This document shows, piece after piece, positions 32,601 through 64,000 of a stretch of 64,000 nt of DNA. This DNA comes from Takakia lepidozioides (taxonomy: Eukaryota; Plantae; Bryophyta): positions 47,001 through 111,000 of the forward strand of contig JAKLZA010000295.1 in the NCBI GenBank assembly GCA_030704615.1, given 5' to 3'. Made by a program: the position numbers and the translations under genes. Every line of letters begins with the position of its first letter. Positions within the stretch are counted from its first letter, which is position 1. The notes beneath the pieces were generated by a model, which saw only the letters and a list, made by a program, of their open reading frames with translations, had not been told where the DNA came from and did not search any database.

Positions 32601-33524
32601 AATCACAAAAGATAACGACCTGCCGGATTGGTGTTGTGTAATGACATCTATGTGCAAGTGATTGGCGGCAACGACATTCAGTATAGTTTAGGGCGGACAG
32701 TAAGTGCAGATTATTCAGATTGACTCCACAGTGATTACCGTCGCAAGCATGGAAAGAGGAAGGACTGCTTGAAAGGCAATCAGACAGACTATATGGTCTG
32801 AACAACGATGATTGACGGTATGCCGACCCTCACTCTCTCTTCAAACACATAGGTACATAAATCTCATGAGAGAATCGAATGGCGTTAACGACGCTCGCAA
32901 TTCAGTAGTTCCTGCTAAAGAAGGGAAGAGGAAGGACTCCTTGAAAGGCAATCAGACAGACTGTATGATTGGAACAACAGTGAATGACTGTGCCGATAGT
33001 CATCCACTCATTGTGCGGTAAACCCTTAGCAGAGGAGTAGAAAGCAAATCACCTTTGTGATGGTCGGTAGCGACAATCCCTGTCTGGGACATTCCACAAT
33101 TCTACGCATATCTTCAACAATGAAATGTAAGTTAGATAAAACTTATTGGCGCCTTCTTAGGTTTTGAAATTGGATCCCCTTCTGCAGCTTTCCTCTTCCC
33201 TCTCACATCTGCTGGAATTTCTGTCTGCTCTAGGGTTTCTGGACCTTCTCCCGGTTCGGCGTTCCGCGTGCTTCCACCTCCTTCAGTGTCTATGCGAATC
33301 ATCTCTGCCTCCACAGGCTGGCGCACTCTTATTGCCGACTGTGTCACAGCCGCTGTCTCAGTCTCCGTCTGCTCTTCTGAATCAGTCTCTGCGTTCACCT
33401 GCTGCCTTGGCCCTATGTTCTCCAACAAACGACGCCTCGTCATTTGCTCTCTTGCTCTACGTCTCTCTCTAAGGGAAGTAAAATAAAGAGACTTTCTTCT
33501 CTTTCGTATTGTAGAAGGAACCAT
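29650..33524 (-). CDS. Cargo gene of Mutator-like copy A: ParB-like domain protein, multi-exon, 3'-truncated before any MTase region
   Basis: RLDIPLRRMISMLVVRPPLSHDITKLESDFVHGY..FYLS..VWDGNHRLLAW (DGNHR at 31922-31936), IRWLEIWNSDQTVKDLNQFPK, EWAMIRVVYR|YTKYVLMEG; colinear with the 55959-62323 gene, with shared intron positions. Confidence 0.75.
29871..30592. repeat. Six copies of the 22-bp near-palindrome TGAATGTCGTCAACGACATTCA in intron 29729-30673
   Basis: Copies start at 29871, 29977, 30138, 30245, 30450 and 30571; weaker variants at about 32457, 32585, 32659, 32877 and 33057. Confidence 0.9.
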
Positions 33525-34303: not shown

Positions 34304-37300
34304 ATGGCTTCCTCTGAAGCGGAGTTCTTCTCTGACGACAAACCAGTGCCGTTCTCCCAGGAAGTCCTTGACAATGGATTTGCAATTGTTCTGGAACATG
34401 TCTTGGCTACCCGTTTTCAGCTGCAGAATGGCTCCATCTTTTTGGAGAAAGAGGTGTACGATCTTAAAGGGAAGTTGTTGAAATACTCTTTCCAAAACCG
34501 TGATGAGACGGCTCATATCAGCCAGTGGAGAGTGCGTCCTGGTCGATACAGAGTACTTGGAGAGCCTCGGCGAAAGTCCCTTGGGTCATATGTGACGCCC
34601 GGGACTGCTGCTTCGGTCGTTGAAGACAAGAGGGAGGTGGTGGTGAAAAAAGAACAGACGTCCTCCACTCCAATCGTTGAGCTTTCGGATTCTTCCGATG
34701 ATGACATAAGTGAAATTCCAAATCCAGTCCTTCCTACTGTGGTTGGAGAAGCTGATGAAGAAGAGATTTGTAGTGTCATTCCAAAATTGCGGGCGATGGG
34801 AGGAATGGCTGGATTCAAAAGTGAGTTGCGGGGAATTGATTGGGAATCTTTGAAGCAGGTGCCTGTGAAGTTCTTGCCGAGACTTTTGATGGCGATATCC
34901 TATTCGAGCTGCCTCCTCCTCCGCGAGTTGGAGGTGTAACAATCATGATGCATGGAATGGACAAGAAACACGACGGGCACCCGTGGTGCAGAACAAAAAC
35001 ATCCAATATTCAGAAATGATGACAAGCTTGTTTTCAGGAGGACAGTTTGCAATGGACACCTTAGGGTGTGATAATTTGAATTGCAGACACTTTCTTCAGT
35101 CTGGGTTCATAATCCTCCACCGGCAAACACTTTCGTCTGCAAATTCTGCAAACTTGTGCCATCCTGCTTGGCGCTCTGCGGAGCAAGAATGTACTATGTT
35201 GTCCACCGTTTGAAAACAATGACAAGAGCTTGTGTGCATTTCGGATTCCATAACCATCCTGTCTCGAAGGGGGATTACAGGGAGAGTGTTGAGACAGTAT
35301 CGAGGTTGATTAAACAGGAGTTCGGGAGAAACCCATCCGCAACAACATCTGCAATTGCTCTTGGCGCAAGCAAGTCCTTCTTGGAAAGCCATATTTTGAG
35401 TGAAGGGGATTCTGTGGGGACTAAACTTGACGGTGCAGCATTGGACCTGGTCATGATCATTTCTCCACTTTAAGTTCACCTAACATTCGGCATCAGATCA
35501 ATGCATTGAGAATGGGCTCTGGGATCAGAGGCTACATAGACAATATTTTGGAATTGAAACGAGTGAGCAAGTACGATTACATCCAGGACAATGTATTCCC
35601 AGGTCAAGGTGCCATCAAAGTTTTTCTTTTCAAAATGTCGACTGTTGGGGAGGGCAGTGGGGTTAGCCTCGTGAAGCGGATGCAGAAAGACTGGGGACTT
35701 GCAGAACTGTTTTCTTATGTTTGATCATGTGAAACGAGTGAAGGATTGGACGACAATGGCTTGTCATGTCTACGATCCAGTGTACCAACGAGTTATGACA
35801 ATTGCAGTTTGTGACATGCAATCCGAGGATACGGAATCCCAGAAGCTCATGTGGAATTCCCTGATACGTGTCATGGGCTGCCATGGGCTGCATCTCCAAA
35901 TTTCGCAGGTTTCATGGCGGATAGTGCTCAAGCAAATTTCAATGCTGTTCGTATTGTCTTCGGATCGGGCGACCCAAAAGTGCCATGCCAGGAAGAGAGC
36001 GTACATGTCTATTCCATTGGACACAATCTCTGGAAAAACATACAAAGTCGGACATCAAACCAGAGATGCAGACTCAGCACCGTAAATTGTGCAAAGAGTA
36101 CAAAGATGCTAGAACAATGAAGGAGGCGGACACTTTGTTCCAGACAATTCGTGCCTGGTGGTTCTCTTCTGGAGCTGCATCACTTGAGAGTATGAGAGCA
36201 TTGGAAGATTGGCTGGCGTTTTGGCACTTCCGGTATAGACAGTGGGGAGCAGCCATGCCAATGGTACGAGGCTTATATTTCTTGCTTTATTCATACATTT
36301 GCTTTCCATTTTTTGTGTCCTCGCTTTCTTTATGTTGTTTTCTGTTCACTGTTTTGAAGTGTGGTTCTCCACTTTGCAGAACATGTCCATTGAGGAAATG
36401 GCGGACATGCCATCTTGCAATTTGGCAGAAACTGTGCACAACGCATGGTTGCAGCAGTCTGGGAAACGAGGTCGGGATTTGTATGTGGCAACAACAGATG
36501 ATTTGATACGTGCCTTGCAACAACAAACCCGATACCGTGATTTCTTACGAGGTGGGGTTGGTGGCAAGGGTCCGGACAAATGGGAGTTGATGTTGCGTGC
36601 TGCAAACAGATCTGGGGATCCAATCAAGATAGCACGGGCGGTGAGCATGTATGCCCAGGGAACGCCACTTGTTTCTAGAGTTCCACATCTTGAAGGGGAG
36701 GAGAGATTCGGCTCCTGTAAGAGGAAATTGAACACTCCACCTGGTTCGGATTCAGATTCCACAGGGCACCGTGATAACTTCTCGAAGCCTCGTGTTCCCC
36801 TGCATGACAGCTCCATGTCCGGAACCTCCATTGTGGAGGAACCTCCAACACGACGGCAAGCTCCAGCATCAAACAGTGCCTGAAATGGTGCAGGAGAGAA
36901 ACAACCCCCTTGATGTGCTTGAGTCCGCATGCCCCGACCACGTTTGGCACATAGAACGCACAAGTGTAGGGTCTCGTGTGAAATGTACAGCGATCAGGGC
37001 AACTAATTTCGAGAAGTGCACTTCATCTATATCCAGAGGTGGTGCCCGAACTCCTGCTCCGACTTTCACGGGCTTGATGCGTCCATACGGTCAACCAGAA
37101 AGCCAAGAACCACAAGTTCTGGTTCTGCGCAGATGATTGTGCCAGATGTGTGCATGGAACTGTGCGTCCTTCCGTAGTGATGAAGCCATCTCCTCCAACC
37201 GTTTGGCCCGTGAAGGTGGGAACACATCTCAGCTTTCAGGAGATTGAAATGCTGGAGGAGGCAGGTTTTTCCCTTGCGAGACAACCCCAACTCCATGCAT

Positions 37301-37837
37301 GTGCTACTACTTCTGCGTCCTCCCGGGTCCCCCGGCAAATCCTGACTTGTGGCCAACCAAACGAGATGGAAAGCTCGTTCGGCGTTCCCTCCAACCGCTG
37401 AACACTTTGGCAAAGTGGAGTCCGCAAGAATGCTCCAAGCTCGTGTTGGAAGCACCACGGAAGTACCCCATCCAGGATATGGTCGGGTATTCACAATCAT
37501 CACTTCCACATCTGCTGTTCATGACAGGACCTACGACATCACGGTTTCCAATTTCCCCAATTGCACATGTCCTGATTTTGTGAATATGCTATCAACCAGT
37601 TTGGGCAAGAGAGGTAAATTCATACCCTGCAAACATTTGTATTTCATATTTTTGAAGAGGATGGTTTGCGATCCCAAACGTGACAACTTCATTCACCAGG
37701 CCACTATGAGTTTCAACGAGGTCGATACTCTTTGCAGCGGGATACAACACATGGGTAGCATGAACTATGCAATGTGGTATGTGGACGACCATGATTTGAA
37801 ATGTGTAATTCACATCAATTCGTCGGCGGTGCAATGA
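34304..37837 (+). CDS. Mutator/MULE-like DDE transposase with N-terminal zinc-binding domain and C-terminal SWIM finger (copy A), frameshifted; intron 36264-36379
   Basis: FDHVKRV (D, 35723), FMADSAQAN (D, 35920), CLFH (36006), NLAETVH (E, 36428); SWIM CTCPDF...PCKH. Confidence 0.8.
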
Positions 37838-47165: not shown

Positions 47166-49094
47166 TGGCCAGTGTGCATCAGGTGCGGTCTTGGATTGGA
47201 TCGGCGGTGCTATTGGATGTAGTAGCGGTGGGATCACGCGTGCATCGACCTCGATTGTGGTGGACCAATCTTGCACCATCAGAGCTGCTCAAGAGAGCAT
47301 ACGATTCCATTCAACGGCCATCCAATCTCACGGTTGAAGGCATTTTGGACTAAGGGAGGCAACCACAGAGAGTGCGACATGATGATCGTCCACCTCTAGC
47401 AGTGGTCAATCGAGTGGGGCAGCCACGTGCGGCCTTATCTACGCTCATGAGCTTTCCCTCGTCTCATGCTTTCCGAGACAATGGTCCTGGGTTGATTTGG
47501 GATAGTGTGCTACAACAATTGGTGGAGCACAATACGGATGAGCGAGAACGGGCAATGGGTTTTACCACGGGCACTACAGATGTGTCAGCTCTGTCAGAGT
47601 ATCACGCCGCCAAGTGTTGGGTCAAGCAATGGATTTAAATTGCTTGACATGGATAATTGGCTTGTGCATGGCTGAGCAACGGAGATTGCAAGCATTGGTG
47701 GCTACTTTTGTACTCCCATTGGATAGTGCATCCTCCCTGCCAACCGGGACGGTTGAGGCAGTGAGTAGGGGCGAGCACAGGATCATGGGTTGCAAACACC
47801 CATGGCAGATGTGGGATGAGATGCGCAAAGAGAGAGTCATTGGATCTCTCAAGCAGCAGTATGAGGAGTGGGGAGAGCCACGGACTAATGATCAGTTGGA
47901 GGCCAAGGTGGCCAAGGTTTTTGAAGAGGTTGAGAATATTTCTTGCTCAGAGGATATTCTCAAGGTGGCTATGGCGGAGCAAGTACAGACTACGCCACAG
48001 TCAGATTGGGCGGACAAGGCCTAAGAGGTTGCTATCTAGCAACCAAAGGATTCGTCTCCTACCTCCAAGTCTGGTGTACCCAAGGTTGCAGTCACTAGGG
48101 ACAATTGGGAACCAGATGTTGGACCTACAGTCACCGGAGGAGAGATGGAGGATCCAGCAATTTCAAAGGGCTTATATAAATTGTTTTGCCTTCAGTTTGA
48201 AGGATTTGGGGAATTTGAAGGGTCAGGAGATTTGTAATGATTTGGCAAGTGACACGCCAATCTTTCAAAGGCCCTACCGGTATAGTGACATGGAGAGGTC
48301 ATTGATCCAGTCACGGACTATGGGAGTTGTTCAAAGCTGGATTGGTGGAGTTGTCAGGCGGGGAGTATGCCTCTTCAACGGTGATGCCAGCTAAAAAGGA
48401 TATCTATGGCAATTGGACAGAAAGAAGGATGTGTGGGGACTATCGTCCTGTGAACCGTCAGACTAAGTCCGATAGATATGCCATGCCAACTCCAGAGGAG
48501 ATCTTTGATGCTATTGGACATACAAAGGTGTTTAGCACATTGGACTTGCGATCCGGTTACCACCAGTTGCCAATCAAAGAGGCTGACAAGCAAAAGATGG
48601 CATTCTGGGGGATTGACCAACATGGGAAGGATTGTTTGTACCAATGGCGGTTCTTACCGTTTGGGTTGAAGAATGCTCCTGCAGAGTTTCAGAGGGTCAT
48701 GGATAGGATTCTCGCGGGGCTAGACTTCGCCTGGTGCTACATTGATGACATCATTGTCTTTAGTGCTACGGTTGAGGAACATGAGAGACACCTTCATGTG
48801 GTATTTGGACGCTTGAGAGCGCACGGGTTGAAACTGCACCCCGGAAAGTGCAAGTTCTTCCACAATCAGATTGAGTATCTGGGCCACATGATATACCCTG
48901 GAGGATTGGGTGTTCAACAGACAAAGGTGGAGGCCATTGCATGCATTCCACGCCCCATGGATGTGAGCAGAGTTCGTGCTTTCATGGGATTGGCAAACTA
49001 CTATCGACGGTTTGTCAAGGGATTTAGCAGCATTGCAAAGGCTCTTACCAAGTTGACCAAGGTGGGTCAAGAGTGGCAATGGGAGGAGGAGCAG
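47166..49094 (+). mobile_element. Gypsy pol fragment with the C-terminal half of a C5 cytosine methyltransferase followed by RT
   Basis: LLDVVAVGSRVHRPRLWWTNL (motif VIII-like), ERERAMGF (IX), RQVLGQAMD (X); then RMCGDYRPVN, LDLRSGYHQ, PFGLKNAP, YIDD; cut at 49094 by the TIR element. Confidence 0.8.
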
Positions 49095-49639
49095 GGAGGT
49101 TTGCTATTTCATGAGCATGAGCGGCATGAGCGGCATGAGCGGCATGAGCGGAGTAGTAAGACAAATTTTTCATGAGCAGAAGTACAAATTTCGAAAATAA
49201 AAAACAATAAAAAACAATACTTTAATGCAAAATGTCAAGAAAAAAAATTATTATTCGGTCCCTGAAGGGAAACTTGCAGTTTTGACAGTTTGTGCTCATA
49301 TAATTTCGTTCCGCTCATGCCAATTCAGCGGACATGTGCAATATGGCGCCGAATTCGCGGAAATGGTCCGTAACCTGAAAAAACGGCAACGTATTCGCAG
49401 TAATAGGTCTCTCTGGCGAAAATTGGCCGAAATCCGGGCTATAGGTCCCCTCATGACAGGTAATTCGGCGCCATTTTTCCAGAAATGGCCCAACAACTGA
49501 TTCTGTTGGATCTCAATTTGAATGGAATATTTGCCTCATTCCAGGAGTTTTGGGGTGCATTTCATTACACTGCAAAAAAAAAATCTGATACAGCAAAATG
49601 CAATTGAAAATATCCATATGGAGGATTCCCTTTGCCCCA

Positions 49640-52600
49640 TCAATGATTTCTGGAATCCCAAAGGAGGAGTTTGTGCAGCTCGTTCACGCTCAACGCCGGT
49701 GCATGAATAAAGTCATCAATAGTCACGTTCATCCTCAACCTCTTCAGGTAAATGTAATACAGATGCTTGCACGGATAATACTTCGAACCCTTCTTTGCTT
49801 CCATCAACGACAAGTCCGTACAATTGCAAGTCGGCTCCACTCCAATCGTAATTGTGTATACATCGTCGCGTACAGCCGAGCCGGCCGTTGCCATCCGATT
49901 ACACACGCCCAAGGCCGGGTGGGGGTACGTCCACGGAAGATCTGAATAGTGCAAGCCATCCCAAGAGCATTGGCAATCCGAGTCTCATTCAACTTGTTGG
50001 GAGGGTGTCGTCTCTTCACTCTTCCGAATCGCATTGTGGGATGTGCAGAATTGTCCAATCCGTCTCTACTGGACCGAGCAGTCTGCAATGGCTGGGTCTG
50101 AGGAACCGGAAATGCGTGGCCCGGGATGTCTGTGCGTTGCACCATTCGAAATCCTGCTGCAGAAAGAGAGCATCCGCTCTCATTCTGAGAGAGGCTGCAA
50201 CCCGGTGCAACAGGCCAGATGCCCGGAGGCTCCGGCATTCCTGAATCCGTACTTGGGCTTGCCAAATACACAGGTCATTATGTCGTGCCTACAGAACCAA
50301 AATGTCTGCGTTGTGGCGTGAGCAAATGTGGGAGTCAAAACTCTGCCGCTGAAACAAGGTGCAGGTACAACACTGTGTGGGTTCCTCCGAATCATCTCAC
50401 CACAACGTGCTCTCGTATCCACCCGGATGGCGCAGTACTTCCCTTGAAATGCCGGCAATGTCCTTGCAATTCTCCACTGTGACTCCAACACTCTTGTCTC
50501 CACAATGGGAATGTTGTACTGCTTTATTACAGATGGCTCGTTATGTTGCCGGGGCACGCGCCTGTGCTCGAAGGAGATGGCGATCTTGAACGTGCAGGAC
50601 TTGCGGTGCTCGACGAGACCTCCTCGGGCAACATCACCGGACCACGAGGGAGCGTGCAAATTCTTGTCAGCTCGCCATGAATCCTCTTCTCCGCCAGGTG
50701 CCTCGTCAAGTCTTTGTCTCACTGGACGGGTATGAACATCTCCTTCCAAATGTTGGCCTCTTCGCAGCAATGGCGTGTCCCGAAGGCCCTCTCGCAAGGC
50801 CGCCGCCCCACTTCCGAGGATTCTTCGATCTAGAGGCAGTCCGCATCAGCATTTCCTGCCTGTCCGGCCCCCAAGCCCACTGTTTCCCTTTCAAGAACTC
50901 GTTGTATCTGCATTGCTGGCATAATTGACCTCACAATGTCATCCGTTGTGGCAGTGAGGATGTCCACCAGATGTGCCGCAGAGGAGGCACGCCAGGAAGA
51001 GTGCACTGATTCGGCCATGTTTGTCGTGGGCATGTCGGTGTCGGAGGTCAAGACACATTTCCTGCACAAGCACATGTTGAGGTTACAAGCAAGTTACAAA
51101 TATGGCCAAGATAATATTCAACGGGACGCGAATTCGTGCAATTCACCTCCCGCATATAGTCGCCGAACTGGAGGAAACGATAATGCGCCATGCTAGCCAA
51201 CTGACCATTGCTCCCTCGTCTGATTTCCTTACAGCACCTGACGATGTCCACCAAGCCCGTATGCATGCAAACTGTGTCTCTGCATCATCCAGGTGGGAGC
51301 GCGCTTCCACGCAAGGCACATGGAACGGTTGCTCCTCTCTGAAATCTGGCGCCACGAGCCTGGTTGTGTACTGCGAAAGGCTCTGCAGAAAATGGAACCC
51401 ACAAGATCTCTCCTTGCCTTCTATGGGAACATTGGGGTCTTGCCCGTACACCCTTCGGATGGCAGCCCAATTTGCTTGTGCGTTGTCCGCATGAAACCAC
51501 GGAAATTGGGAGGGGCAATCCCGCCTTGGCCATCTGTTCGTTTGATTCCCTGCCAAAGAAGCATCTCCAATTGTGTGTCCTCTCCTTTCATCTCACAAAT
51601 AGCAATTGTCATTAGCATCCTGCAGTGGGTGTCGTAGACATGTGCACCCATTGTCACCACTGGTGATTTATAATTCGCTTGATATGGTCGAACATGACCC
51701 AACTGTTTGACAAGTTCCCACTCGTCATCCTGTCGACCAGTTCGACGCCGCTGCCAGGTACACGTGGACATTTTGAATACGAAACAACGATCTGCCTCAG
51801 TCCCTTGTCCTGGAAACCTACTTCCATGAATATAGTCATATCCACATCGTCGCTTCACCTCCAGAATGGAGTGCATATCCGAGCCACGCCCAATTTTCTG
51901 TTTGCATGAGACAATGTGGTTTCGGACATTCGGTGATGACATACGTGGGACACAGCACCTCCATTCTTCTCGTCGAGGAGGAACTCTATCGGAAGCCGTC
52001 TTCCGAGCATAATTCTGGCCAATGCCATCTTATGGGCGGCTTGGAGCTGTATCTGTTTGGGTTTGGCACCCGGTCTCAACTTAACCTCCTCCTGAACGAG
52101 CTGCTCTGCTTCGTGGGCAGCCTCCCGCGAGTTCCCCCTCGCCAATTTGTGACAATGGGAACCAACGTGTATGCAAGCTCGGGTGAGGTCAGGGAAACGG
52201 TGCAACACATAGAACTGCTTGGCATTACAAACAGACATGCAGTGTGGTGGTTCTTTGCAATGCGCACACTTAAATGTGGAGTTCGGAACCTTCTCCTGAG
52301 CTCGAAATGGTTGGTGAGCTGTGCCTGTCCAATCGGTCTCGTTCCTGTGACCTCTGGATTTAAAGTGGAAGCAAGTTGGGGAGAAACACCGCAACGCGCC
52401 CGCACAAACAACGTAGCGCACCCGCACACCATCAAGCATCTTCATGCTGGTGGTTTTGGTAACGCACCAAGGATGACCGTCATGTTTTCTATCCATATCT
52501 GTCAACATTCCGGACGCCCTCGAGTAGTCCGCCCGAGGAGGGAACTCAAAGAAGATATTACCGTCGACGTCGGCGGGAAGGCATGTAACCGATTTAATTG

Positions 52601-53221
52601 CGAACTTGCTGTAGTCCAGCCCGGCCAGCTCCGACCGGTGTCCCTCCAGGTGAAGCCCTCGCAGAATTTCTAGAATAGATCGAACTGCGGTGCTCGTGCT
52701 GGGAATATGACTCCCTCCTCCACTGACGTCCATTGAGGACTTGCCTGATCTCCAGGACGACCTCGGAACTTCCATGACCTCGTCTGAGTCGGACAGGTTG
52801 TGAACAACCCGTTCTCGGTCGTCTTCATGGATGGGTTCGGCTCTGGATTTACTTCGTTGCGGACTTCTCTCTTTGAGGTACCCACTCTCTGATTCGCGGA
52901 TTGTTTCGTGGAAGGCGCCAGGATAGACGGTGCATTTGGCGGGCAAATGAAGTCCCCAACAGCCCTGTATATGACGCTGTCCGATGGTGGAACTCGCCAT
53001 TCCCTGCCATCGCCGAAATCATCGTGGAGCACAACAATACTCTCGACAACAAGGCCGTTTGAGTCCTTCCTTTCCTCCTCCAAAAAAACCGACCCCGGTT
53101 TCAGGTGGTATCGAACGCACAGATATTTCTCCATCACCCGGCAGGTGTCCCCTCTGCACGGAAATGAAGCTCTATGCTCGTGAGGAGGGCAGTACACTGT
53201 AGCGCTCGGGTTTTCCGCCAT
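49640..53221 (-). CDS. Mutator/MULE-like DDE transposase with SWIM finger (copy B), frameshifted; intron 51062-51146
   Basis: MDRKHDGHPW, RACIHVGSHCH, MFDHIKRI, ADNAQAN, CGFH, TTNMAESVH, CNCTD..YPCKH; colinear with copy A, same intron position. Confidence 0.8.
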
Positions 53222-53520
53222 GGGAGATGTGCACACAAGACTGCCAGGATGGCGTGCGGGGAAGCTCCCTGGTAGAAGGGGGTGCAGCGATGGGAATGAA
53301 TGCGATGCCGATTTGTCCGAGCGACGAAGCCTGATCCAAATCCAGGGAGCCAACTATCTCAAAAATCCACAGTCAGAGTGTTAATGAACCTTGTCTCCGG
53401 AATGCGGCCCCTCGTCTTTGCGCAATAACTGCCAACGGTATGCAGTCAGAAAGTGGGGGGCCGTCCGGATGATGACGGCTGAAGGGGATAAGCCGGCACC
53501 GTGCCGTCACATTACTACCC

Positions 53521-55720
53521 CCGAATGGAAATTCGGCACCAACATCCAACAGAGGAAGCCCGGATGAAGTCGCCTCGGGCGCAGAGGCCGGAGTGTGTGC
53601 GACAGATAACATCCTGGATGGAGATTCGGCGCCGAATTTCCATCCGGTCCCCCAAAGGGAGTCGTGTCGGGGGGTCAGGCCGAAAACTGGACGGCATAAA
53701 AACATCCCCAGATGGAAAAACGGCGCCGAATTTCCATCCGGGGCGATTCGGATGCAGTCGGGGAGGGGGGAGTGGCCTGCAGTTGGCTGTCACATTTCAA
53801 CCCCCGGACGGAAATTCGGCAACGAATATCGAACAGGGGACGCCCGGATGAAGTCGCCTGGGGCACAGAGGCCGGCCAGTGTGCGACAGAGAACATCCCC
53901 TGGACGGCCATTCGGCGCCGAATTTCCATCCGGGCCCCCCCAAAGGAAGTGTTGTCGGGTGTCAGAGCGAAAACTGGCCGACATAAAAACCTCCACAGAT
54001 GAGAAAACGGCGCCGAATTTCAATTCGGGGCCGTTCCAATGAAGTCGGGGAGGGGGAGAGGTCGGAACCTGGCAGTCATATTTTCAACCCCCGGGACGGA
54101 AATTCGGCACCGAATATCCAAATCTCCGACAGAGACCATCCCCCGGATGGAGATTCGGCGCCGAATTTCCATCCAGCAGGTAAGTGGAATCTCGGATGGA
54201 TGGAGATAGAAACAGCAGGTAAGTCCGGGGCCCACAGCCCCAGCAGGTAAAATCGGCGCCGAATTTCCATACGGCGAATTTCCATCCAGCAGGTAAGAAT
54301 ATGGATATTCGGCGCCGAATTTCCATCCTGCAGCCGTGAAAATCGAAAAGGGCTGCACAGGCCCCGAATTTCGCCAATATTAATTGCCCCGGTTAGCAGG
54401 TAAGTCGGATCGGTGCCGGCGCCGAATTTCGCCGGGATGAATGGAAATTCGGCGCCGAATTTCCATTAAAATCGGCGCCGAATTTCCAACCCGGCGCCGA
54501 ATTTCCATTAAAACGGCGCCGAATTTCCATCCTGCAGGTAATTCGAATCCGGCGCCGAATTTCCATCCAGCAGGTAAGTCGGATCGATATGGATATTCGG
54601 CGCCGAATTTCCATCCTGCAGCGAATCGTGGATGAATGGAAATTCGGCGCCGAATTTCCATCCAGCAGGTAAGTCGGATCATATGGATATTTTCCATCCT
54701 GCCCCGTTTCCATCCAGCCGAACTTCGTGCAGCCAACCTGTGCCAGTCCCCCTGGAGCCCAGGAATTACCTTCGTGCAGGTAATATACCCTTTGTGCAGG
54801 TAATTTCCAGATGACAATTACCTTCCTGCAGGTAATTCCAATCGATGTTTATTCCTCGTCCAGAATTACCTGCACAAAGGTAATTCTCATCTGGAAATTA
54901 CCTGCATGAAGGTAATTCTTGTATGTGAATTACCTGCACGAAGGTAATTCTTATATGGGAATTACCTGCACGGAGGTAATTCCTCGCTCAGAAATAAATG
55001 GCGAATCGAAATTCGGCGCCGAATATCCATATGGCACCGATCCGACTTACCTGCAGGATGGAAATTCGGCGGCCGAAAATGGAAAAAATTTACCTGCCTA
55101 ATGGAAATTCGGCGCCGGATTTCCAATCCGGATGGAAATTCGGCGCCGGATTTCCATATCCGGCCTGCGATGAAGCGCGGATGGAAATTCGGCGCCCAAT
55201 TTACCATCAATTTTACCTGCTTGAAGGAAATTTGGCGCAAATGGAAATTTCCATTCCGGCGCGGATGGAAATTCGGCGCCGGATTTCCATCCGCGCGCAT
55301 CCGAATTACCTGCTTGAAGGAAATTTGGCGCACCGCCCTAATGGAAATTCGGCGCCGGATTTCCATATTTTGGAAATTCTTTCCATCCGCGCGGAATTAC
55401 CTGCTTGAAGGAAATTTGGCGCACCGCGCGCGATGGAAATTCGGCGCCGGATCCCTTTGTTGCGCTGCGGATGGAAATTCGGCGCCGGATTCCATCCATC
55501 CGGCGCAAAGCTTTTTACCTGCGCCGATTTCCATTCCGGCGCGGATGGAAATTCGGCGCCGGATTTCCCGCGCGCATCCGAATTACCTGCTTGAAGGAAA
55601 TTTTTTTTTGCGCGGATGGAAATTCGGCGCCGGATTTCCATCCGCGCGCGAATTACCTGCTTGAAGGAAATTTTACCTGCGCGGATGGAAATTCGGCGCC
55701 GGATTTCCATCCGCGCGCTT
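53521..55720. repeat. Intergenic array of about 30 GGAAATTCGGCGCCGAATTTCC palindromes/variants plus AATTACCT-N6-AGGTAATT motifs
   Basis: Seen directly; ~96-bp spacing within ~290-bp units at 53520-54100; motif orientation flips at ~54850. Confidence 0.92.
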
Positions 55721-55958
55721 CCGAATTACCTCGTGAGGGAAATTCCGGGACTGTTTTCGTCTATTTTCTTCCGACATGGAGGGCTTCATCCGACATTTAA
55801 TTGCGCAGTTGGGCAATAAATGTCGACGGCCGTCGTTATTATTCGGGCTGGCGACGCATGGCTTCCTGGACACGTACCCTAAATCTCATGCTATACTTGG
55901 CTTAACATGGTATTCCAGGCATGTACCCCAAAAAAGGAGATCTTTTTGGCTGGGACTT

Positions 55959-58900
55959 ATGCCGCCTGAAGGGCGTGGCTCTCCTGAGAGAGACCTCAGA
56001 TCCAGACCGCGGCGGGTTGAAAGCTCTGTACTACGGACGACGGCCAATCTCTCGCATGGCCAAACTGAAGCTCCAGCAGGAGATTCCAGTGTCTTGCTCA
56101 CAACCTGCGCCAACTGAAGCCGAGTACTCTCAGGCAAGCCACTTCTGCTTTCGGTTTGTTCGATTTCTTTTTTTGCTTTCGCTTCGTTACCTCGCTTTGT
56201 TTTGCATCTTCATCCTGGCTTTGCTTTATGAGTGAACTTTAGATAGTTGACTGAACCTTAGATTGTTTGCAATGCGTGTGCAAATCCGGCAGCTCTGGAG
56301 AAGGCTGCTTGTGCATGTCATTCTTAGGCAATGGTTGCATTTGTTTTCATTGTTGTTGCATGGCTCTCCATACTTCCTAAACTTGTTATGTTTTCATTTT
56401 TGCTACATGATTGCTGCTATGGTGGTTGCGCTGCTGCTTTTTGCACCATGTTGGTTTCACGATTTTTGTCAATCACAGAGTGACGACGAGCCCGGCACGC
56501 TGGTGGTATCATCGACAGCTCCAACTCATCGCATGTTTGAATCGCCCAACTTGGGGCGAGAGGGCAAACTTAAATCTTTTGTTGGTGGACGGGAGGACTT
56601 GCAACGAGATTACGATAGAGTAGGCATTGGGGAGGTTGGTGCAGGCGGCATGGCAGGTGAAGGGCGTGAGGACATGAGGACAGCAGATCCGGCAATGGAG
56701 GTTGTTCATGCACATGCAGTAGGGCCCGCCCACGCAAAGAAAAAGAAGAAAGCTAAGCACATGCAATCCCCGGCGAGAGAGCAGTCACGGGCTGCGGAGG
56801 GGGGAGTGAGCAGTGCGCGCGAGGGTGTCAGTTCGCCTCAATCAAAGGTGGTCGTCCTGGAGGGCTCCCCTGTTGCTAGCCCTAGTAAGAAAGAAAAAGC
56901 CCGTGAGAGGGCAAAAGAGAGGGCAAAAGAACAGACGAGACAGAATGCTAGCAAGGAGGAAAGACAAAAGGCAGCTGAAGAGGCCAGGGGTGCCCAAATG
57001 ACAGATGCCAATGTAAGCGAGGGACACACAGAGACGGTGGATCCCTACAAGACACCACAGAGAGGCAGTAGCACACCGGTTAGACCATCGCGGGCAAGTG
57101 CAGCCCCCGCAATTACCCATACGGTGGAGAGTGGAGGAGAGGAAAGAACACCTGAAAGAGCACGATTGTGCAAGTTCGAGGTGAAGCCAGGGAGAGGGCA
57201 GTAGAGACGACGAGAGTGCTGGAGGTGGTTTCGCAGGTGGCTGACCCTGTTGAGGAGGACGACATGGAGTTTCTGACCAGGATGACATTCTCCCGGACAT
57301 CCCCAGGCCCCAAACCCGGAGCATACAGGCTGGATTTGGCGGTCTTGGTGGGCTGCCGGAAAACCCCTCTGCAGCAGACGTCATGTCTGAGGCGGATATG
57401 AAGTTGGCCGCTGCCAAGATGTTGGAGGCAACCCACAGCAACATTGGCAGGGTGCTGGGGGGCATGGTGTACCCGGCCAAGCTTCGAATTCCCCTTTGCC
57501 GCTTGGTGTCATTGCAGGTGGTGAGACCTGCCCTCCCAGGCGATATCGACAAGCTGAAATTCTCTTTCCGGGATGGATATCGAATGGGGTCTGCCGCCTT
57601 TTACGTTTCCATTGAGAACGACCACGGAGCTTCCCGTGCCCACACTTCCGATGAGGTGGACAAATGGGGTCCCCATTGGCAAACGCGAAATGAGGAGTTC
57701 GAGAGATCGATTGCTAGTGATCCTCTTTTCCAGCACATGTCCGGTAAGATGTTCTACGTGTGGGACGGCAATCATCGCCTCCTGGCATGGATGGAGCACA
57801 TTGCCCAAGCCCACCCCAACGATCTCGATTGGCATTTCGCCGTCGATTGTGTTGTGCTGAAGGTTGCGGGGCCCAAAGATCGCAGTCTTCTCAAAGCTGC
57901 AATGGCCGACATCAACTCGTAAGCTACAACCCCTCTCGCTTTTGGACTTTGAATTTGGAAGTCATTTCATTGCGAATCCTCATATATGATGAAAATTCCC
58001 ATTTCAGTATTGTTTGATGGAAATGTGGCACTGCAGGGTGACTGAGAATGCCTTCATTGCCACCAACTTGTCCCATATGCTCTTCCGAGTGAAGGATGTC
58101 GGGAAGCAGGGGGTGCAAAGAGTTTGCCAATTCCCTCAGTGCCGACCTCCTGCGCAAGTCGGAGGCAAAGGCAGACAGAACCTGGTATAGGCTGAGCGTC
58201 GACGCCATGGTGGACTACATATTTCGGGTAAAGCTCCTGCAGTTTTGTTGAGCTAATTTGTCTCTCCTCCCCCAATAGAAGAAATTGTGTTGAGCAGGAT
58301 CTCTAATCTTATGTGCGCTTTTCGACAGACGAAAATACAGCAGGATTTGGCACATGCGCGGAGGTTCTACATGGAGTCAGAGGAGAAGAATCCAACCCTC
58401 CCGGAACTCGAATCGTATGTCAAAGCTGCGGAGGTGAGGGCCCGCATAAAGTACAAGTCGCGGATGGTAAAGTACGTGGCCATAGCTGATCCCGCCCTTG
58501 GTGCCGACTTTCTGGTGGAGGTGGGAAGCACTACTCTCGCGCTCTGAAGCCCACGATGACATTGGAGAAGCTCCATCGTCTAGCCACATCCTGTGTGGAT
58601 GCAACAGAAAAGGTGATACATTCTTAACCAAATTGTGGTGGCAACAACTCCTTTTTGTGGTGTTTGGCGCTTACGAATATGCTGGGTGGTTGGACAGACC
58701 CGGTGGCTCCAAATCTGGAATGGTTCCCAAAGTACCAGGGACATGTGGAGCTTCCCCAAACCGGACAAACTCTCTGACCCCACATTCGACATGTGGATGA
58801 ACCGCATGACATGGTGGGTTTCAGGTACTTCCCCACGCTTCGTTTGGGGCTTCTACTCTAGTAGGGGGTGGATTCATTGTATTTTTTGAGGAAAGCGATC

Positions 58901-61900
58901 TGATGGACAATCTCCACAGGTGACGACGAATGCGCAAGAGCAGCTGGACACACAAGCACATCAGTTCAAGATGGAGATATCTCCTGCAGCAGAGAGCCTA
59001 CGTGACTATGTGACGAGGTACTTTCTGCTCTACAAAACCAACCTATTCTTTCGGGAGATAGCAGATGCTCGCCGGAGCCACGAGTTCACCGACCAGCCGA
59101 ACGCGGACAAAGCAGCAATGCGCCTTCTGTACAGGTACATACGCGCTGCCTTTCTTTTCAAGTCCTGGCATTTCAGGATGTTAGAGGCCTAAGTGGTGTT
59201 AGGGAAAATGGCGCCGAATTTCCAGTCAGGGCTCCGAAAATGGCAAAGTCCCTAGACTGGCTGGCCCGGAACTGGAAATTCGGCGCCATTTTCCAGTTCC
59301 AGGCCCTATTGCCGTTCAGGGACTTAGCCATTTTCGGGCTAAGTCCCTAGTGTGGCTGGCCCGGAACTGGAAATTCGGCGCCGTTTTTCCAGTTCTAGGC
59401 CCTATTGCCGTCCAGGGACTTAGCCATTTTCGGGCTAAGTCCCTAGACTGGCTGGCCCTGAAGTGGAAATTCGGCGCCATTTCCAGTTCCAGGCCCTATT
59501 GCCGTCCAGGGACTTAGCCATTTTCTAAGTCCCTAGGGTGGCTGGCCAACTGGAAATTCGGCGCCCCAGTTCTAGGCCCTATTGCCGTCCAGGGACTTAG
59601 CCATAAGTCCCTAGACTGGCTGGCCCTGAAGTGGAAATTCGGCGCCATTTCCAGTTCCAGGCCTATTGCCGTCCAGGGACTTAGCCATTTTCGGCTAAGT
59701 CCCTAGGGTGGCTGGCCCGGAACTGGAAATTCGGCGCCGTTTCCAGTTCTAGGCCCTATTGCCGTCAGGGACTTAGCCATTAAGTCCCTAGGGTGGCTGT
59801 GGAAATTCGGCGCCGTTTTCCAGTTCCAGGCCTATTGCCGTCCAGGGACTTAGCCATTTTCGGGCTAAGTCCCTAACTGGGTGGCCCTGAAGTGGAAATT
59901 CGGCGCCATATTCCAGTTGTAGGCCCTATTGCCGTTCAGGTTAGCCATTTCGGACCTCATTGGGTTTTTCATGAATGCAGGTACTGTAAGTTCTCCTTTT
60001 GGAGAAAGGTCATCTGTCTTTCGAGCCACCATTCTTCCTGGCATGGAGGAACCCTGGGGCTGACTCCATGTACACTGACGATATTGTGAAGGAGTGGCAT
60101 CTGGAACATTTGCGTGATTGCCCTTGGTATGTGGACCTTCCGCCCGGCTCGCTCGACCCCGAGTTTCAATTGAAGCTGGATGCTGAATTCCGACGAAACC
60201 GGGCTCCGCTGCCTCCGTTGGGTGCAAAAGAGGCAAAAGCGCTTGCGAACTCCAGGAAAGCGGCAGAGCTTGCTCAGGCAGGAATTCAGAGAAATTGCAT
60301 GAGAAGAGTAAAGGTCAAAGGAAAAGGACAAGGAAACAGGTGACTGCAGTAACACCCAAAAAGAAGAAAACCATCGGGGCATCGGAGGAGGCGCAGGAGG
60401 GGACCCAAGAGAGTGACTCCGACGCCGATTTTGTTCAAGGTCCTGCGACTGCTGTTGCTCCTACCCAGTCACCGGTCGTCCGGGTTCCCAAGTCAGTTCG
60501 GAGTGGGACTGGCTCTGCCAAGAAGTTGGCATTTGAGGGCGAGCCTACACGGCGGTATTCGGCGGTGACGTTTACGCACAGGCCAAAGCTAGAACCTCCA
60601 ACCATCATCCAATGCGTCAATGAGAGCTTCCTTGACGCTCTCGCTGCCAGGGCGAAGAAGGTGGCACACAACAAGTCTCTGGCGGAGCAGAAGGGAAAAG
60701 CCAAGAAGAGGGCTGCCGGTACAGAGCCTAAAGACACCCCTGGTTTTGAAGCCATGATGGAATTCTTCACGGCTGTGAGCACGAATTGCAAGAGCACTCG
60801 GGGGGGGTTGAGGTGGAGAGAGCTTGCGACATGATTCTCCTCGACATTCCAGATGGGGAGCTGCTGGAGGGCCTGGATGGTGTGCCACCTGGAACAGGTT
60901 TACTGAGGACTACTGGAAAGCCGGGTTTGGGCTGGCGGGGATGCTTCTGGATGACGGTGGATGTGTGGTTGTCCTTGCCACGAGAGGGAAGACCACAGAG
61001 AATGCGGTGGCAAGGTGGACACCGAAAAGTGTCACCCCGGTCCTCCTCAGAAAATGGTTCTGCATCAGTACGCAGGGGTTGCGAACAGAGGGCCAAAGTG
61101 TAAGTTATCAATCTATTGCATTCACTTCATATTGTGGTGTATGTTAAGTAGACCCTGGAATTGATCCATTCTTTGTTGGATGTGCAGACATTGGTGTTTG
61201 AGGCATATTGCTTTGTGAAGAGAGGGTCTACGTTCAAATTCCGCAACGACGGTCGTCTTGTTGATGCGCTGTGGACCCTGTAACCTACGATGTCCTCTAC
61301 AACTATGTGCCCCACTCTAGTATGCCGAAGGACACAAAGACAGGCAAACCGTGGCGGTACAGCCGGACCCGAAGCCCTGCTTTCATCCAAACCCTCATGG
61401 AGACGTGCTCGGATGTCCAAGGGCGGATTCTGGACCTCACATGCGGCACGGGTAAGCCTTCACGTGCTCAGTTTGTCCCCTGGCCCCATTGCAATTGCAT
61501 GCCGCAAGCTATTAACCGCCCGCTTTGTTCCTCAGGTGCTTCAATGTGGGCAGGGACGTTGTCCGACAGGCATGTGTTCGCCTTCGAGCCAGATACTGCC
61601 CTCCACAACTCGGAACTTGCAGCGGCTGAACGTCTGCCGAAAGAGGAAGAGGCATCCTCGGAGGATGAGGAAAAATCCGAGAAGGAGCAGGGGGAGGAAG
61701 TTGGGATCGAGGCCGAGGAGCCCCCGGTTTACGAGTGAGTGGTGGCATTGTAAGTTGCCTCCAGATTTTGTGAGGCACCTCCCTCCGCTCTCTTATTTCA
61801 TTGAAAACCCTTTCTGGTTGTGCTGGTATTGACATTCTTCAAGTGGATTTGTTCTTACTGTAGGATGCCAAGTACTGCCGGAGGGACGTCTACACCGGAG

Positions 61901-62323
61901 TTCATGGGCAGGAGGAACGTGCCTTTTTTTGCCAGGGGAGATTTCATGCCTAGTCCAGAAAGGGAGTACATCCTGCCTACTTATGCTGCCCGGCTTGCTT
62001 CGGTGTCCATTAGGAGGTGTTCCGAACGTAGTCGTGTACAGCAGATTTTAGACGAGGCAAGCCTCAAGAAAATGAAGATGAGGGAGGAGGCAGCAGCTAT
62101 TAGAGCCCGTCGGGCTCGTAGATTTGTGTTGGATTCTGCTGAGGAAAGTGGGGGAGAAGACGCAGAAGATTCCCAGGAGGTGAGGTGGACAGTCCCCCAA
62201 GGAGAGGACGGGATTTTTGAGAGGCATAGTGGAACTGATGCATCACAGAGCTCGGAGGATGAGGGGGATGAGGGGGATGAGGAAGAAGGTGGGGCAAGTT
62301 CCTCGGAGGGTGTAGGAGAGTAG
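55959..62323 (+). CDS. Cargo gene of copy B: low-complexity N-terminus, ParB/Srx-like domain, uncharacterised middle region, beta-class N4C/N6A DNA-methyltransferase-like domain, acidic tail. Approximate exons: 55959-56133, 56479-57918, 58037-58227, 58329-58824, 58920-59134, 59981-61099, 61189-61451, 61536-61734, 61864-62323
   Basis: LRIPLCRL..VVRP..IDKLKFSFRDGY..FYVWDGNHRLLAW; CDMILLDIPDG (60843); LLDDGGCVVV; RSPAFIQTLMETCSDVQGRILDLTCGT|GASMWAGTLSDRHVFAFEPD. Start codon and terminal exons uncertain. Confidence 0.72.
59203..59950. repeat. About eight tandem ~90-bp hairpin units centred on GGAAATTCGGCGCC, in intron 59135-59980
   Basis: Unit aagtccctag..ggaactggaaattcggcgccatttccagttcc..agggacttag; cores at about 59275, 59369, 59465, 59552, 59634, 59726, 59801 and 59895. 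Confidence 0.92.
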
Positions 62324-62679
62324 TGCCCATTCCGGCTATGACAGTTAGAACACACTTGTATAGACGTGGCTTGCCACAAAATTTGCAATAAAATGTTGCA
62401 TTTTAAGTCCACTGGTGCCACATTCCAACTTCACATGACCCTATTTCCGTGCCTCCTAACCCTATTTCCGTGGACTCACAATGGTCTGCTCATGCTTTTT
62501 TTTTTTTCCGCTCATGCTCATGCCGCTCATGCTCATGCCGCTCATGAAATAGCAGCCCCCCATTCACCCATTCGGGCCTTTTGGTGACATGTTCCACAAA
62601 ACCAAAACAGTAGACCAGTTAGCTATAGAATAAAATCCACATGGAAATGAAAAACATTCAAAGCAGAGTTTTGTGTGGG

Positions 62680-63289
62680 CACCTTAGTGAGGAAAGAAAC
62701 CAGGACGTCCCAAGTTTTTGATTTCTCTCCTTTGAATGTGGATTTTCTGGACTCCATCATTGCCAAGAAGCTCTCATTAACCACCTCACTTTGATATTGA
62801 CCCAAAACCCGAGAAGGGTGTTATTAGGCCTCGTAAGGCTGTTCTCTACTTTTCGGAGTTCTCTTGTCCTTCCGATTCGGAGAAGGCTGATGCTCTGTGG
62901 TGTCCTCCACAGCCTGTTCTTGCCCTGCCACACTCTTCCCCTTCCCCTTCCCATCCCCAGCACCCTTCCTTTTCCGCTTGGGAGTGCTACTTTTCTCCGG
63001 CTCCTTTGCGGTGAGGGATTGAATTGTTCTCTCCTGAATGTCTTTGTCACTGAGTGGTGCCAGTGCTGCTACGTTGTCATTAAAGTTCCTCATGACCACC
63101 TCCTCGAATGGTGTGTCTTGTTTTGGTAAGTCAAGGTACCATCCGCAGTCTCTGAAGTGCACCCTGCTCCAGTCCTTCGCAATCCCAGCCGTGTACATTG
63201 TCTTGTCCTTAGAGGGGTCCGCCCAAATGTAAATGAAATCCGGGTCATCGCTGAGATATTTCCCCGGAATGAGGACATGGTAGATGTAC
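62680..63289 (-). CDS. Internal exon of a third, divergent cargo-gene homolog (copy C), truncated
   Basis: YIYHVLIPGKYL..MYTAGIAKDWSRVHFRDCGWYLDLP..LAPL..VNESFLA aligns with copy B MYTDDIVKEWHLEHLRDCPWYVDLP..LPPL..VNESFLD. Confidence 0.75.
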
Positions 63290-63376
63290 CTGGAAAACAC
63301 ACCCAAAATAACAATTTCATGAAGGTTACAGTTCAGCAGACACACAGCAGGTACACAGTAGTTTTGATGCCTCAAC

Positions 63377-64000
63377 CAACCTTGTGTTGACGCAAGGTTG
63401 ATTGAGCCATCAAAACTTGCAGCCCAAACTAGCAATGAATACAAAGAATTGGTCTATTCTGAGCAAGAATCAACCTTGCGTCAACGCAAGGTTGAACAGT
63501 GCGTACAAGCATAACTTCCCTATAGAGATGAAATCAAACGTAAATCAACCTTGCGTTAACACAAGGTTGATATGAGTCCGGAAAAAGATCATTCAAAAAC
63601 AAATTTTAAAACCAAGAAACGATATCTTGTGTGCATGAAACAACCTTGCGTTGACGCAAGGTTGAAAATCCCTTACAAGAAGATCTGAAGGAAACAAATG
63701 AAAGCAAACGGAAATTGACCTTGAGATGATGCAAGGTTGATTTGGGTCTGGAAAAGTACGCACGTATTGCAGAATTCGAAGCCTACGCAAAATGTACTCC
63801 GGTTTTCAATCAACCTTGAGTCAACGCAAGGTTGATTACTGATTACAGAAAAAACTCAAAAATACAGTTGCATACAACCGGCACTCAACCTTGCGTCAAC
63901 GCAAGGTTGGGACATGCCTGCAAAAGAAGCATACCACACAAAGAAAAAAGGAAATAAAATACACAATGCTGAGCCTGAATCAACCTTGCGTTGACGCAAG
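63377..64000. repeat. Array of the 24-bp near-palindrome CAACCTTGCGTTGACGCAAGGTTG in the copy C intron
   Basis: Copies at 63377, 63471, 63546, 63641, ~63716 (degenerate), 63811, 63886 and 63981; runs off the window edge. Confidence 0.92.

Follow-up and report, generated by a model that had tools for sequence, protein, structure and literature searches.

Introduction

What kind of element is the large transposon in this stretch of the Takakia lepidozioides genome, and what are its palindrome arrays for? The stretch analysed here, 64,000 nucleotides of contig JAKLZA010000295.1 (positions 47,001 to 111,000 of the forward strand; hereafter, the window), contains element B, a DNA transposon of ~13.5 kb that lies between terminal inverted repeats (window 49095-62561), and its relatives A and C. 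An earlier note on this DNA proposed element B as a candidate for a new system, in which the protein of an accessory ("cargo") gene recognises the palindromes of its own element. We show that element B and its relatives share a conserved design, which consists of a divergent transposase, an accessory gene (ParB/Srx-like domain, helical middle, methyltransferase-like domain), and private palindrome arrays. By comparison with published elements, we regard element B as a member of a new lineage and not as a new system, since similar accessory genes and the idea of self-binding have been published for algal transposons.

Results

The accessory protein has a predicted ParB/Srx domain

A ParB-like exon of the cargo gene encodes the segment VWDGNHRLLAW, and the DGNHRxxA motif reported in the earlier note is readily recognised in it. 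A search with this exon retrieves 489 proteins at E values up to 1e-3 among 1.84 billion representatives. Most of the homologs are exon-sized metagenome fragments. Named homologs belong to the liverwort Riccia sorocarpa, some of them as full-length models (1100-1250 aa), and to Adiantum ferns. In an alignment of 52 members, the segments IPLCRL, VR, W..W, F.VWDGNHRL.AW, and AMH..N are nearly invariant. In particular, residues G172, N173, H174, and R175, which correspond to the GxxR phosphate-binding motif, are invariant or nearly so.

The AlphaFold (AF2) model of the exon has a pLDDT of 86. When the model is compared with the PDB by Foldseek, the top 37 matches all have the ParB/Srx fold (among them sulfiredoxin, PadC, Noc, ParB, KorB, an archaeal ParB-N domain, and SbnI), in accordance with the structural match that the earlier note anticipated. 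The match probabilities are 0.66-1.0 (0.97-1.0 for the first 23), the E values are ~1e-2 at best and up to 0.58, and the target-normalised TM scores reach up to 0.63. Because the model is confident and its top matches are exclusively of this fold, the assignment of the N-terminal domain of the cargo protein to the ParB/Srx fold is supported at the level of the predicted structure. Profile and sequence searches of the domain against PDB sequences and Pfam give no relevant match, Pfam searches of the single open reading frames of element B give nothing but a weak SWIM match, and a tblastn search of 50,697 phage records with the exon gives no detectable match.

A methyltransferase-like domain follows a long middle region

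The middle region of the cargo protein, ~600-650 aa between the two domains, contains two conserved blocks. At the C-terminus, the motifs follow the order of beta-class methyltransferases, with motif IV ahead of motif I. The earlier note had read beta-class motifs in the spliced gene; both motifs are present, and a canonical GT..AG intron (61452-61535) splits motif I. In an alignment that covers B, the ENA contig L001, Riccia, and Adiantum, motif I and the following segment are near canonical (L001 reads VVDLTASTGASL..GRHFIGVERD).

The expected N6_N4_Mtase match is found as well. In Riccia homologs, the Pfam family N6_N4_Mtase (PF01555) matches with E values of 9.4e-6 to 5e-5 (best 26.2 bits; cut-off 26.7), and protein P0166 has a precomputed PF01555 match. 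The cargo methyltransferase domain matches the phage PHROG "DNA methyltransferase" family phrog_3008 (E 8.7e-7) and an NCBIfam DNA methyltransferase (E 0.013), and a tblastn search matches a Lactobacillus phage DNA methylase (E 4e-3). The best PDB sequence matches are CcrM (E 0.013) and DpnA (E 0.07), the latter collinear over 150 residues. Together, these sequence matches support a relationship of the C-terminal domain to beta-class N6/N4 DNA methyltransferases. UniRef names four of the Riccia proteins (P0158, P0160, P0161, and P0165) "Trimethylguanosine synthase". That identity is unsupported by the motif order (IV before I) and by the Pfam and PHROG matches, and the name is likely an automatic misannotation.

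Motif IV reads D-[LIMVF]-P-x-G in the members examined, not (D/S/N)PP(Y/F/W). It is DIPDG in B, DLPTG and DMPSG in Riccia, and DVPFG and DFPIG in Adiantum. The altered motif is kept from liverworts to ferns, indicating that it is a variant rather than the product of decay.

A cargo intron of ~800 bp contains palindrome array 2. In the methyltransferase region of B, the reading frame changes at a G8 run (60800-60807) and near 60885-60890, which reflects either real decay or assembly indels. A hidden Markov model built from Riccia only, and therefore narrow, does not recover the other exons of B, and a word-indexed protein search with the motif-I exon of B gives no match.

The transposase is divergent and degraded in copy B

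The transposase and the spliced cargo gene stand head-to-head, as the earlier note claimed, with the transposase on the minus strand and the cargo gene on the plus strand. The transposase persists as remnants in several frames (49643-53353), each of which is collinear with a plus-strand piece of relative A (34388-37732) at 26-43% identity. We read the motifs by eye, with the intact relatives P0178 and P0184 as guides. The N-terminus contains a Cys/His-rich region (C..C ... IH.G.H.H), the RNase H-like core contains MFDHVKR, HVYD, FMADNAQA, C/DxxH, and TTNMAES, and the C-terminus contains a SWIM finger pattern (CxC..CxH). In this way, the D, D, C/DxxH, and E motifs can be recognised in B, A, P0178, and P0184. 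Of the DDE/CxxH/SWIM transposase described earlier, the motifs and the SWIM pattern therefore stand, while the copy in B is degraded and has probably lost the first Asp, a position at which it reads Gly (QLGHVR). Because of this Gly and because the gene is spread over several frames, the transposase of copy B is probably dead. Copy B itself is a decayed and probably no longer functional copy of a divergent, probably Mutator-like, DNA transposon family.

Pfam SWIM matches relative A with an E value of 0.0018 (18.2 bits; cut-off 19.6) and B with an E value of 0.024, both under the Pfam cut-off. Pfam MULE (PF10551) matches none of 17 sequences, for which the best profile is ZSWIM1-3_RNaseH-like (E 0.18), and profile searches with the transposase against NCBIfam and PDB give no match. 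The label "Mutator-like" given to the element thus agrees with its terminal inverted repeats and lacks significant profile support. The architecture read from the motifs is probably that of Mutator-like transposases; the statistical support is thin, and the element family is divergent.

Element B contains arrays of a private palindrome

The 22-bp palindrome GGAAATTCGGCGCCGAATTTCC occurs in 22 copies at three mismatches or fewer (0 in 100 shuffles) and in 37 copies at six mismatches or fewer (0.1 expected), and its half-site occurs in 41 copies. The estimate of about 40 copies in non-coding DNA is therefore fair. All copies lie at 49337-59894, and none is found elsewhere in the window. Besides the copies in the divergent intergenic region, seven of the 37 are in the intron array and two are near the left end. 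The arrays are tandem, with units of ~96, 69, and 32 bp, and contain two other inverted repeats. The repeat GAATTACCTGCAnnAAGGTAATTC, distinct from the main palindrome, is also scattered in the intergenic array (54783-55700). Each ~96-bp unit of the intron array (59289-59900) contains a hairpin, AGGGACTTAGCC-(ATTTTCG)-GGCTAAGTCCCT, beside the main palindrome.

The design recurs in relatives A and C and in other genomes

Relatives A and C have palindromes of their own. Relative A contains nine copies of GTGAATGTCGTCAACGACATTCAC at 29870-32658, six at the place equivalent to the cargo intron of B and three between the genes, and relative C contains seven copies of TCAACCTTGCGTCAACGCAAGGTTGA at 63376-63885. 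Neither palindrome occurs elsewhere in the window. The parts of the cargo gene detected are the ParB-like exon in A and, inside the window, the middle-region exon in C. Of the earlier statement that A and C repeat the cargo gene with different palindromes, the palindromes are confirmed, and the cargo gene is detectable as one exon type in each. The statement that A repeats the head-to-head layout holds, as its transposase is on the plus strand and its ParB-like exon on the minus strand (Table 1).

The earlier note also called for a check of the linkage between transposase and cargo gene in other genomes, and the layout does recur there. The search for related loci used an alignment of 11 closer sequences. 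A transposase and a cargo gene are head-to-head in the unrelated ENA contig L001 (39% G+C) and in the Riccia loci L002, L006, and L007. Apart from L006 and L007, the two genes have adjacent locus tags in another three Riccia pairs. The metagenome set comprises 22 non-redundant loci with a length of 6 kb or more; a transposase homolog is detected in nine of them and in every case lies upstream of the cargo gene and on the opposite strand.

In Riccia as well, the elements have private palindromes, arrayed between the two genes, on the downstream side of the cargo gene, and near the element ends. In L002, TTCCGGCGA-N3-TCGCCGGAA and CCAGCGGA-N-TCCGCTGG occur in 9-13 copies. The palindrome CCGGCGGA-N-TCCGCCGG occurs in 23 copies in L003, 16 in L006, and 30 in L007. 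Closely related Riccia elements have related palindromes, and distant elements have unrelated ones. Smaller arrays are present in the metagenome loci L067, L023, L053, and L037. The conserved array sites are between the genes, in the cargo intron or downstream of the gene, and sometimes subterminal, and the palindromes are 17-26 bp long and element-specific. Element-private arrays are thus common in the family, although their universality is not shown.

The palindrome cores resemble type II restriction-modification sites. The core is GGCGCC in B (53620-55708), GTCAAC/GTTGAC in A (29870-30593) and C (63376-63885), and GAGTC/GACTC (GANTC) in Riccia (L003, 8699-15109). GANTC is the site of CcrM and HinfI. 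The resemblance may hint at the target of the methyltransferase or may be a coincidence.

Two Riccia loci depart from the complete design. L003 consists of a cargo gene and arrays, and no transposase homolog is found within its 10-kb flanks on either side. It has inverted ends of its own, rich in CTGATATCAG, at 6585-6638 and 16181-16243. Direct repeats of ~500 bp (5987-6487 and 19230-19658; 91-97% identical, 13.2 kb apart) bracket this cargo-only element and may represent a segmental duplication or nesting in another element. In the transposase of L002 (4149-6053, minus strand), the putative catalytic Glu reads Lys (NAAKSVH, compared with TTNMAESVH in B). This copy, too, is perhaps inactive, despite an intact model of its cargo gene.

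Table 1 Features of element B and its relatives A and C in the window
Feature	Coordinates	Strand	Remarks
Element B, left terminal inverted repeat	49095..49140		tandem 9-mers CATGAGCGG; from inverted-repeat pair and end of Gypsy homology
Element B, two degenerate palindrome copies, left subterminal region	49337..49480
Element B, transposase SWIM-type zinc finger (CxC...CxH)	49643..49984	-	Pfam SWIM E 0.024; matches A 37466-37732
Element B, transposase piece with TTNMAESVH, putative catalytic Glu	50833..51093	-	by eye; match to A
Element B, transposase piece with HADNAQAN (second Asp) and CGFH (CxxH)	51146..51592	-	same motifs in P0178 and P0184
Element B, transposase first-Asp strand region	51424..52029	-	QLGHVR in B, MFDHVKR in relatives
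Element B, transposase N-terminal Cys/His-rich region (C..C ... IHVGSHCH)	51858..53018	-	probable DNA-binding zinc finger
Element B, palindrome array 1, between transposase and cargo gene	53484..55744		28 of 37 copies
Element B, second inverted repeat GAATTACCTGCAnnAAGGTAATTC	54783..54982		32-bp tandem units in array 1
Element B, cargo exon, predicted ParB/Srx-fold domain	57254..57919	+	IPLCRL ... VWDGNHRLLAW ... AMADIN
Element B, cargo middle-region exon	58257..58544	+	block K.A.I.DP.LG..FL
Element B, cargo middle-region exon	58890..59189	+	RLLYRY block
Element B, palindrome array 2, in cargo intron	59242..59940		~96-bp tandem units x7.8
Element B, cargo middle-region exon	59990..60340	+	FFLAWRNPG..SMY...CPWYVD; homologous to C 63040-63276
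Element B, methyltransferase-like domain, N-terminal half	60720..61144	+	motif IV LLDIPDG (DIPDG) at 60843-60857
Element B, methyltransferase-like domain, C-terminal half	61265..61735	+	motif I DLTCGTG / ASMWAG..RHVFAFEPD
Element B, right terminal inverted repeat	62516..62561		from inverted-repeat pair
Relative A, own palindrome GTGAATGTCGTCAACGACATTCAC (24-mer)	29862..32900		six or seven copies at 29862-30593, about four degenerate ones at 32457-32900
Relative A, ParB-like exon	31787..32295	-	two pieces
Relative A, transposase remnants	34388..37834	+	head-to-head with cargo gene of A
Relative C, cargo middle-region exon	62827..63453	-	element cut by window end
Relative C, own palindrome TCAACCTTGCGTCAACGCAAGGTTGA (26-mer)	63368..64000		units ~170 bp

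Boundaries and surroundings of element B

The inverted repeats at 49088-49140 and 62516-62568 are 53 nt long and 77% complementary, with an identical 14-nt core GCTATTTCATGAGC. To the left lies a Gypsy reverse transcriptase (47.6-49.09 kb) whose homology to an intact copy ends at 49091, and the left boundary of element B is therefore fixed independently. Both observations agree with the inverted-repeat-bounded element of 13.5 kb described earlier. The G+C content is 52-55% inside the element, compared with 41-50% in its surroundings. The terminal repeats (49110-49150 and 62500-62548) consist largely of tandem CATGAGCGG / CATGAGCATGAGCGG units. These units differ from the internal palindrome, and a transposase-binding site is more likely there.

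A target-site duplication of 8-11 bp is a criterion of the Mutator superfamily. For element B, no direct repeat of at least 3 bp flanks any plausible pair of ends. The right flank (62562-62830) leads into relative C, which begins within ~300 bp, and a continuation of the interrupted Gypsy element was looked for beyond the right end of B and not found. Because the right flank leads into relative C and is not the Gypsy continuation, the original right flank has probably been replaced, and the present flank may not be the original target, which bears on the search for a target-site duplication.

The window is rich in transposons. In addition to the Gypsy reverse transcriptase next to element B, it contains a Ty1/Copia pol (~17.6-19.8 kb) and a Ty3/Gypsy pol (38494-41816) with an open frame of 726 aa. 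Elements A, B, and C all lie within 35 kb, and each adjoins Gypsy fragments; on its left, A has a Gypsy RNase H piece (27299-27466). Downstream of the Gypsy integrase region, four CTATCACAGCCCATCACA-like repeats form a short cluster (42206-42278).

The CpG observed/expected ratio is 0.83 in element B, 1.28 in its array 1, 0.57-0.68 in A, and 0.64 in C, compared with 0.31-0.49 in the neighbouring Copia and Gypsy elements (17000-22000, 38494-43000, and 47600-49090). The low-CpG Gypsy neighbour nevertheless retains its 726-aa open frame. The high CpG content of the three elements could mean reduced germline CG methylation, or only age or palindrome constraint.

Discussion

Comparison with known systems

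ParB-like and DNA-modifying accessory genes, adjacent inverted-repeat arrays, and the idea of self-binding have been published for transposons of red, brown, and green algae, and the candidate system of the earlier note is accordingly of a known kind. In the brown alga Ectocarpus, the element Sola1-1_Ec32 encodes a 1104-aa protein with ParB-like and DNA-methyltransferase domains opposite its transposase (Genome Biol 2025, PMC12477816). Like element B, it is a giant DNA transposon with an accessory gene opposite the transposase; binding of the element by its accessory protein, together with an epigenetic modification, has been put forward as the function. The likeness is one of description, and the Ectocarpus paper makes no mention of palindrome arrays. 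Sola1-1_Ec32 is a Sola1 element of a brown alga, whereas element B has a SWIM finger pattern, is probably Mutator-like, and has its named relatives in land plants.

In red algae, the accessory genes PAG2 and PAG3 occur not only in Plavaka elements but in Chondrus Mutator and Zisupton elements as well (bioRxiv 10.1101/2025.02.11.637652; Curr Biol 2025). As in element B, an accessory protein has a ParB-like N-terminal domain, and tandem inverted-repeat arrays are adjacent. These arrays accompany the ParB-like gene across transposase superfamilies, the accessory genes include an N6-adenine methylase, and the authors hypothesise self-binding and self-modification and draw a comparison with VANDAL elements (bioRxiv 10.1101/2025.02.11.637652). 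The main carrier, however, is CACTA/Plavaka, and the ParB-like domain is fused to a 2-oxoglutarate (2OG)-dependent oxygenase (PAG3), with the methylase separately fused to SET (PAG2), whereas both domains are in one protein here. By description, the family of element B shares with the algal elements a ParB-like N-terminus fused to a DNA-modifying domain and a large DNA transposon as its home. A red-algal origin, suggested by the first literature match, was dropped, as the named homologs are from Riccia and Adiantum.

The likeness to the Arabidopsis VANDAL elements and their VANC proteins (PMC5735166, PMC10398659) is functional only. VANDAL is a Mutator-type element with an extra gene whose product recognises family-specific motif arrays in the non-coding DNA of the element, and the motifs have diverged among related families. 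VANC, in contrast, lacks both the ParB and the methyltransferase domain and recognises short, non-palindromic motifs. The activity of VANC has been demonstrated experimentally, whereas the family of element B is known from sequence alone.

The two-domain combination of the cargo protein is also found in fusions of a ParB-CTPase fold and an N6_N4 methyltransferase, which are a hallmark of phages and prophages (PNAS 2025, PMC12704722), and in chlorophyte "ParB-HTH + Dam" proteins (PMC4738411). In accordance, the C-terminus of the cargo protein matches phage DNA-methyltransferase families. Unlike the phage fusions, the cargo protein has a long helical middle, plant-type introns, a variant motif IV, and a eukaryotic transposon as its home. 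Fusions of this two-domain kind are a likely ultimate source, by horizontal transfer. Marchantia MpDN4MT1a/b, which are 4mC (N4-methylcytosine) methyltransferases of sperm with a canonical TSPPY motif and are encoded by host genes (bioRxiv 10.1101/2021.02.12.428880), resemble the cargo protein as beta-class amino-methyltransferases of prokaryotic type in a liverwort, but no ParB-like domain is reported for them. Identity with MpDN4MT1 was considered and dropped because of the canonical TSPPY; the two are set apart by description.

No account of comparable elements in land plants turned up in full-text literature searches. Four features seem to be new: the lineage in land plants, a divergent transposase family with a SWIM pattern and a fixed head-to-head layout, the altered motif IV, and the presence of three different palindromes side by side.

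Possible function of the arrays and the accessory protein

We propose that the accessory protein would dimerise on the palindromes of its own element, with the ParB-like domain as a switch dependent on a nucleoside triphosphate (NTP). Binding, perhaps with amino-methylation (4mC or N6-methyladenine, 6mA) of the CG-rich palindrome cores, would alter the chromatin or 5-methylcytosine (5mC) state of the element in cis. The altered state would keep the shared promoter region active, and the gene would act together with its arrays as a module for self-marking or anti-silencing. We tentatively hold this view and consider it quite possible that the cargo protein binds its own palindromes and marks or modifies the element. 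The more specific version, in which the ParB-fold NTP switch and the variant beta-class methyltransferase would write 4mC or 6mA on the palindromes and so let the element escape 5mC silencing (a programmable "address plus writer" module), seems to us unlikely.

Several observations favour self-binding. The arrays recur beside the cargo gene in elements with unrelated palindromes, and related Riccia elements have related palindromes. Indirectly, the CpG ratio of element B, high relative to that of the adjacent retroelements, points in the same direction.

Other observations weigh against self-marking. The ParB-like motif is DGNHR, as in ATP-binding proteins of the Srx and SerK types, and not GERRxRA, which is the CTPase motif. 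In addition, Pfam detects no helix-turn-helix, and no DNA-binding domain is identified in the cargo protein. Therefore, membership in the CTPase clamp family is not supported. The AF2 model of the middle region is all-helical and of low confidence (pLDDT 52.5), and the CTP-dependent clamp that loads and spreads, as suggested in the earlier note, thus finds no support in any of these parts. The aromatic residue of motif IV stacks the flipped base, and the motif lacks this residue, with fern DVPFG as the sole exception, indicating that the target and even the activity are uncertain and that DNA amino-methylation is not assured. The idea that the cargo protein writes marks is therefore unsupported as to catalytic competence, since the motif is not DPPY. 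The CpG excess of element B is explicable by age or by constraint on the palindromes themselves. Many metagenome relatives, many of them decayed, have no clear array. Transposase-binding repeats are usually subterminal, and the Riccia arrays are in part subterminal too, a position that fits transposase binding equally well. Finally, the cargo-only L003 keeps its arrays, yet a non-autonomous element would need transposase sites too.

The last two points lead to a rather unlikely alternative, in which the palindromes are subterminal and internal sites of the transposase, or of a regulator derived from it, and serve transpososome assembly and autoregulation of the bidirectional promoter, while the cargo protein acts independently of them, for example as a methylase of short sites genome-wide or in RNA. 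The arrays near both ends and between the genes in Riccia, the two copies in the left subterminal region of B, and the retention of arrays in L003, as expected for mobilisation in trans, are all consistent with this alternative. The Cys/His-rich N-terminus of the transposase is typical of sequence-specific DNA-binding domains, and an Arabidopsis MULE transposase activates cognate copies sequence-specifically (bioRxiv 10.64898/2026.08.24.746577). However, the terminal repeats of B bear a different motif, CATGAGCGG, which is a more obvious transposase site, and the largest arrays of B are central and intronic, not terminal. Moreover, the red-algal arrays track the ParB-like gene across unrelated transposase superfamilies, indicating that the arrays are tied to the ParB-like gene and not to one transposase. 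The cargo protein might instead bind the palindromes and leave no mark, if its methyltransferase-like domain is dead or retargeted and the protein is an NTP-gated scaffold that excludes or recruits chromatin factors. The absence of an aromatic residue from DLPTG, DMPSG, DIPDG, and DFPIG fits this possibility, as does the fact that the region of motif I, which binds S-adenosylmethionine (SAM), provides most of the basis for the Pfam, PHROG, and PDB matches. On the other hand, liverworts and ferns share both motif I and the variant motif, in which D, P, and G are retained; this conservation speaks for selection on a loop that resembles an active site and on the binding of SAM. The DpnA alignment, too, is collinear over most of the domain. 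On balance, a scaffold without a mark is improbable.

A module similar to restriction-modification or addiction, in which a ParB-like nuclease would attack palindromes that lack the modification while the methyltransferase would shield those of the element itself, has precedents in the ParB-fold nucleases of restriction-modification contexts (PMC4738411) and in the ParB-fold and N6_N4 methyltransferase fusions typical of phages and prophages (PMC12704722). The resemblance of the cores to type II sites, described above, also fits. We consider such a module very unlikely, because all palindromes are inside the element and nothing else is there to restrict, and because the system would be costly in a eukaryotic nucleus; no nuclease signature was found either, although no search aimed at one was made. 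Least plausible of all, and in our view likewise very unlikely, is that the arrays are incidental satellite-like tandem repeats that accumulate in large DNA transposons and have no dedicated binding protein. Their tandem units of ~96, 69, and 32 bp and the many decayed relatives with no clear array would fit such an origin. However, unrelated palindromes occupy the same positions (the divergent intergenic region, and the cargo intron or 3' flank) in A, B, C, L002, L003, L006, and L007, and the algae show the same array association.

Implications

If the cargo protein does read the palindromes of its own element and change the epigenetic state, the family would represent a second anti-silencing system of plant transposons after VANC, mechanistically different from it and built from prokaryotic parts. 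A natural specificity panel for comparing cognate with non-cognate sites is available in the side-by-side elements A, B, and C together with the Riccia subfamilies, whose palindromes are related yet distinct. The algal papers only propose a function, and the land-plant members, some of them with intact Riccia models of 1100-1250 aa, widen the range of experimental systems. The family also bears on the disputed presence of 4mC and 6mA in plant DNA. If the self-marking reading is true, three cognate pairs of protein and palindrome coexist within 35 kb of the Takakia genome, and elements of this kind could be a source of domesticated amino-methyltransferases in bryophytes.

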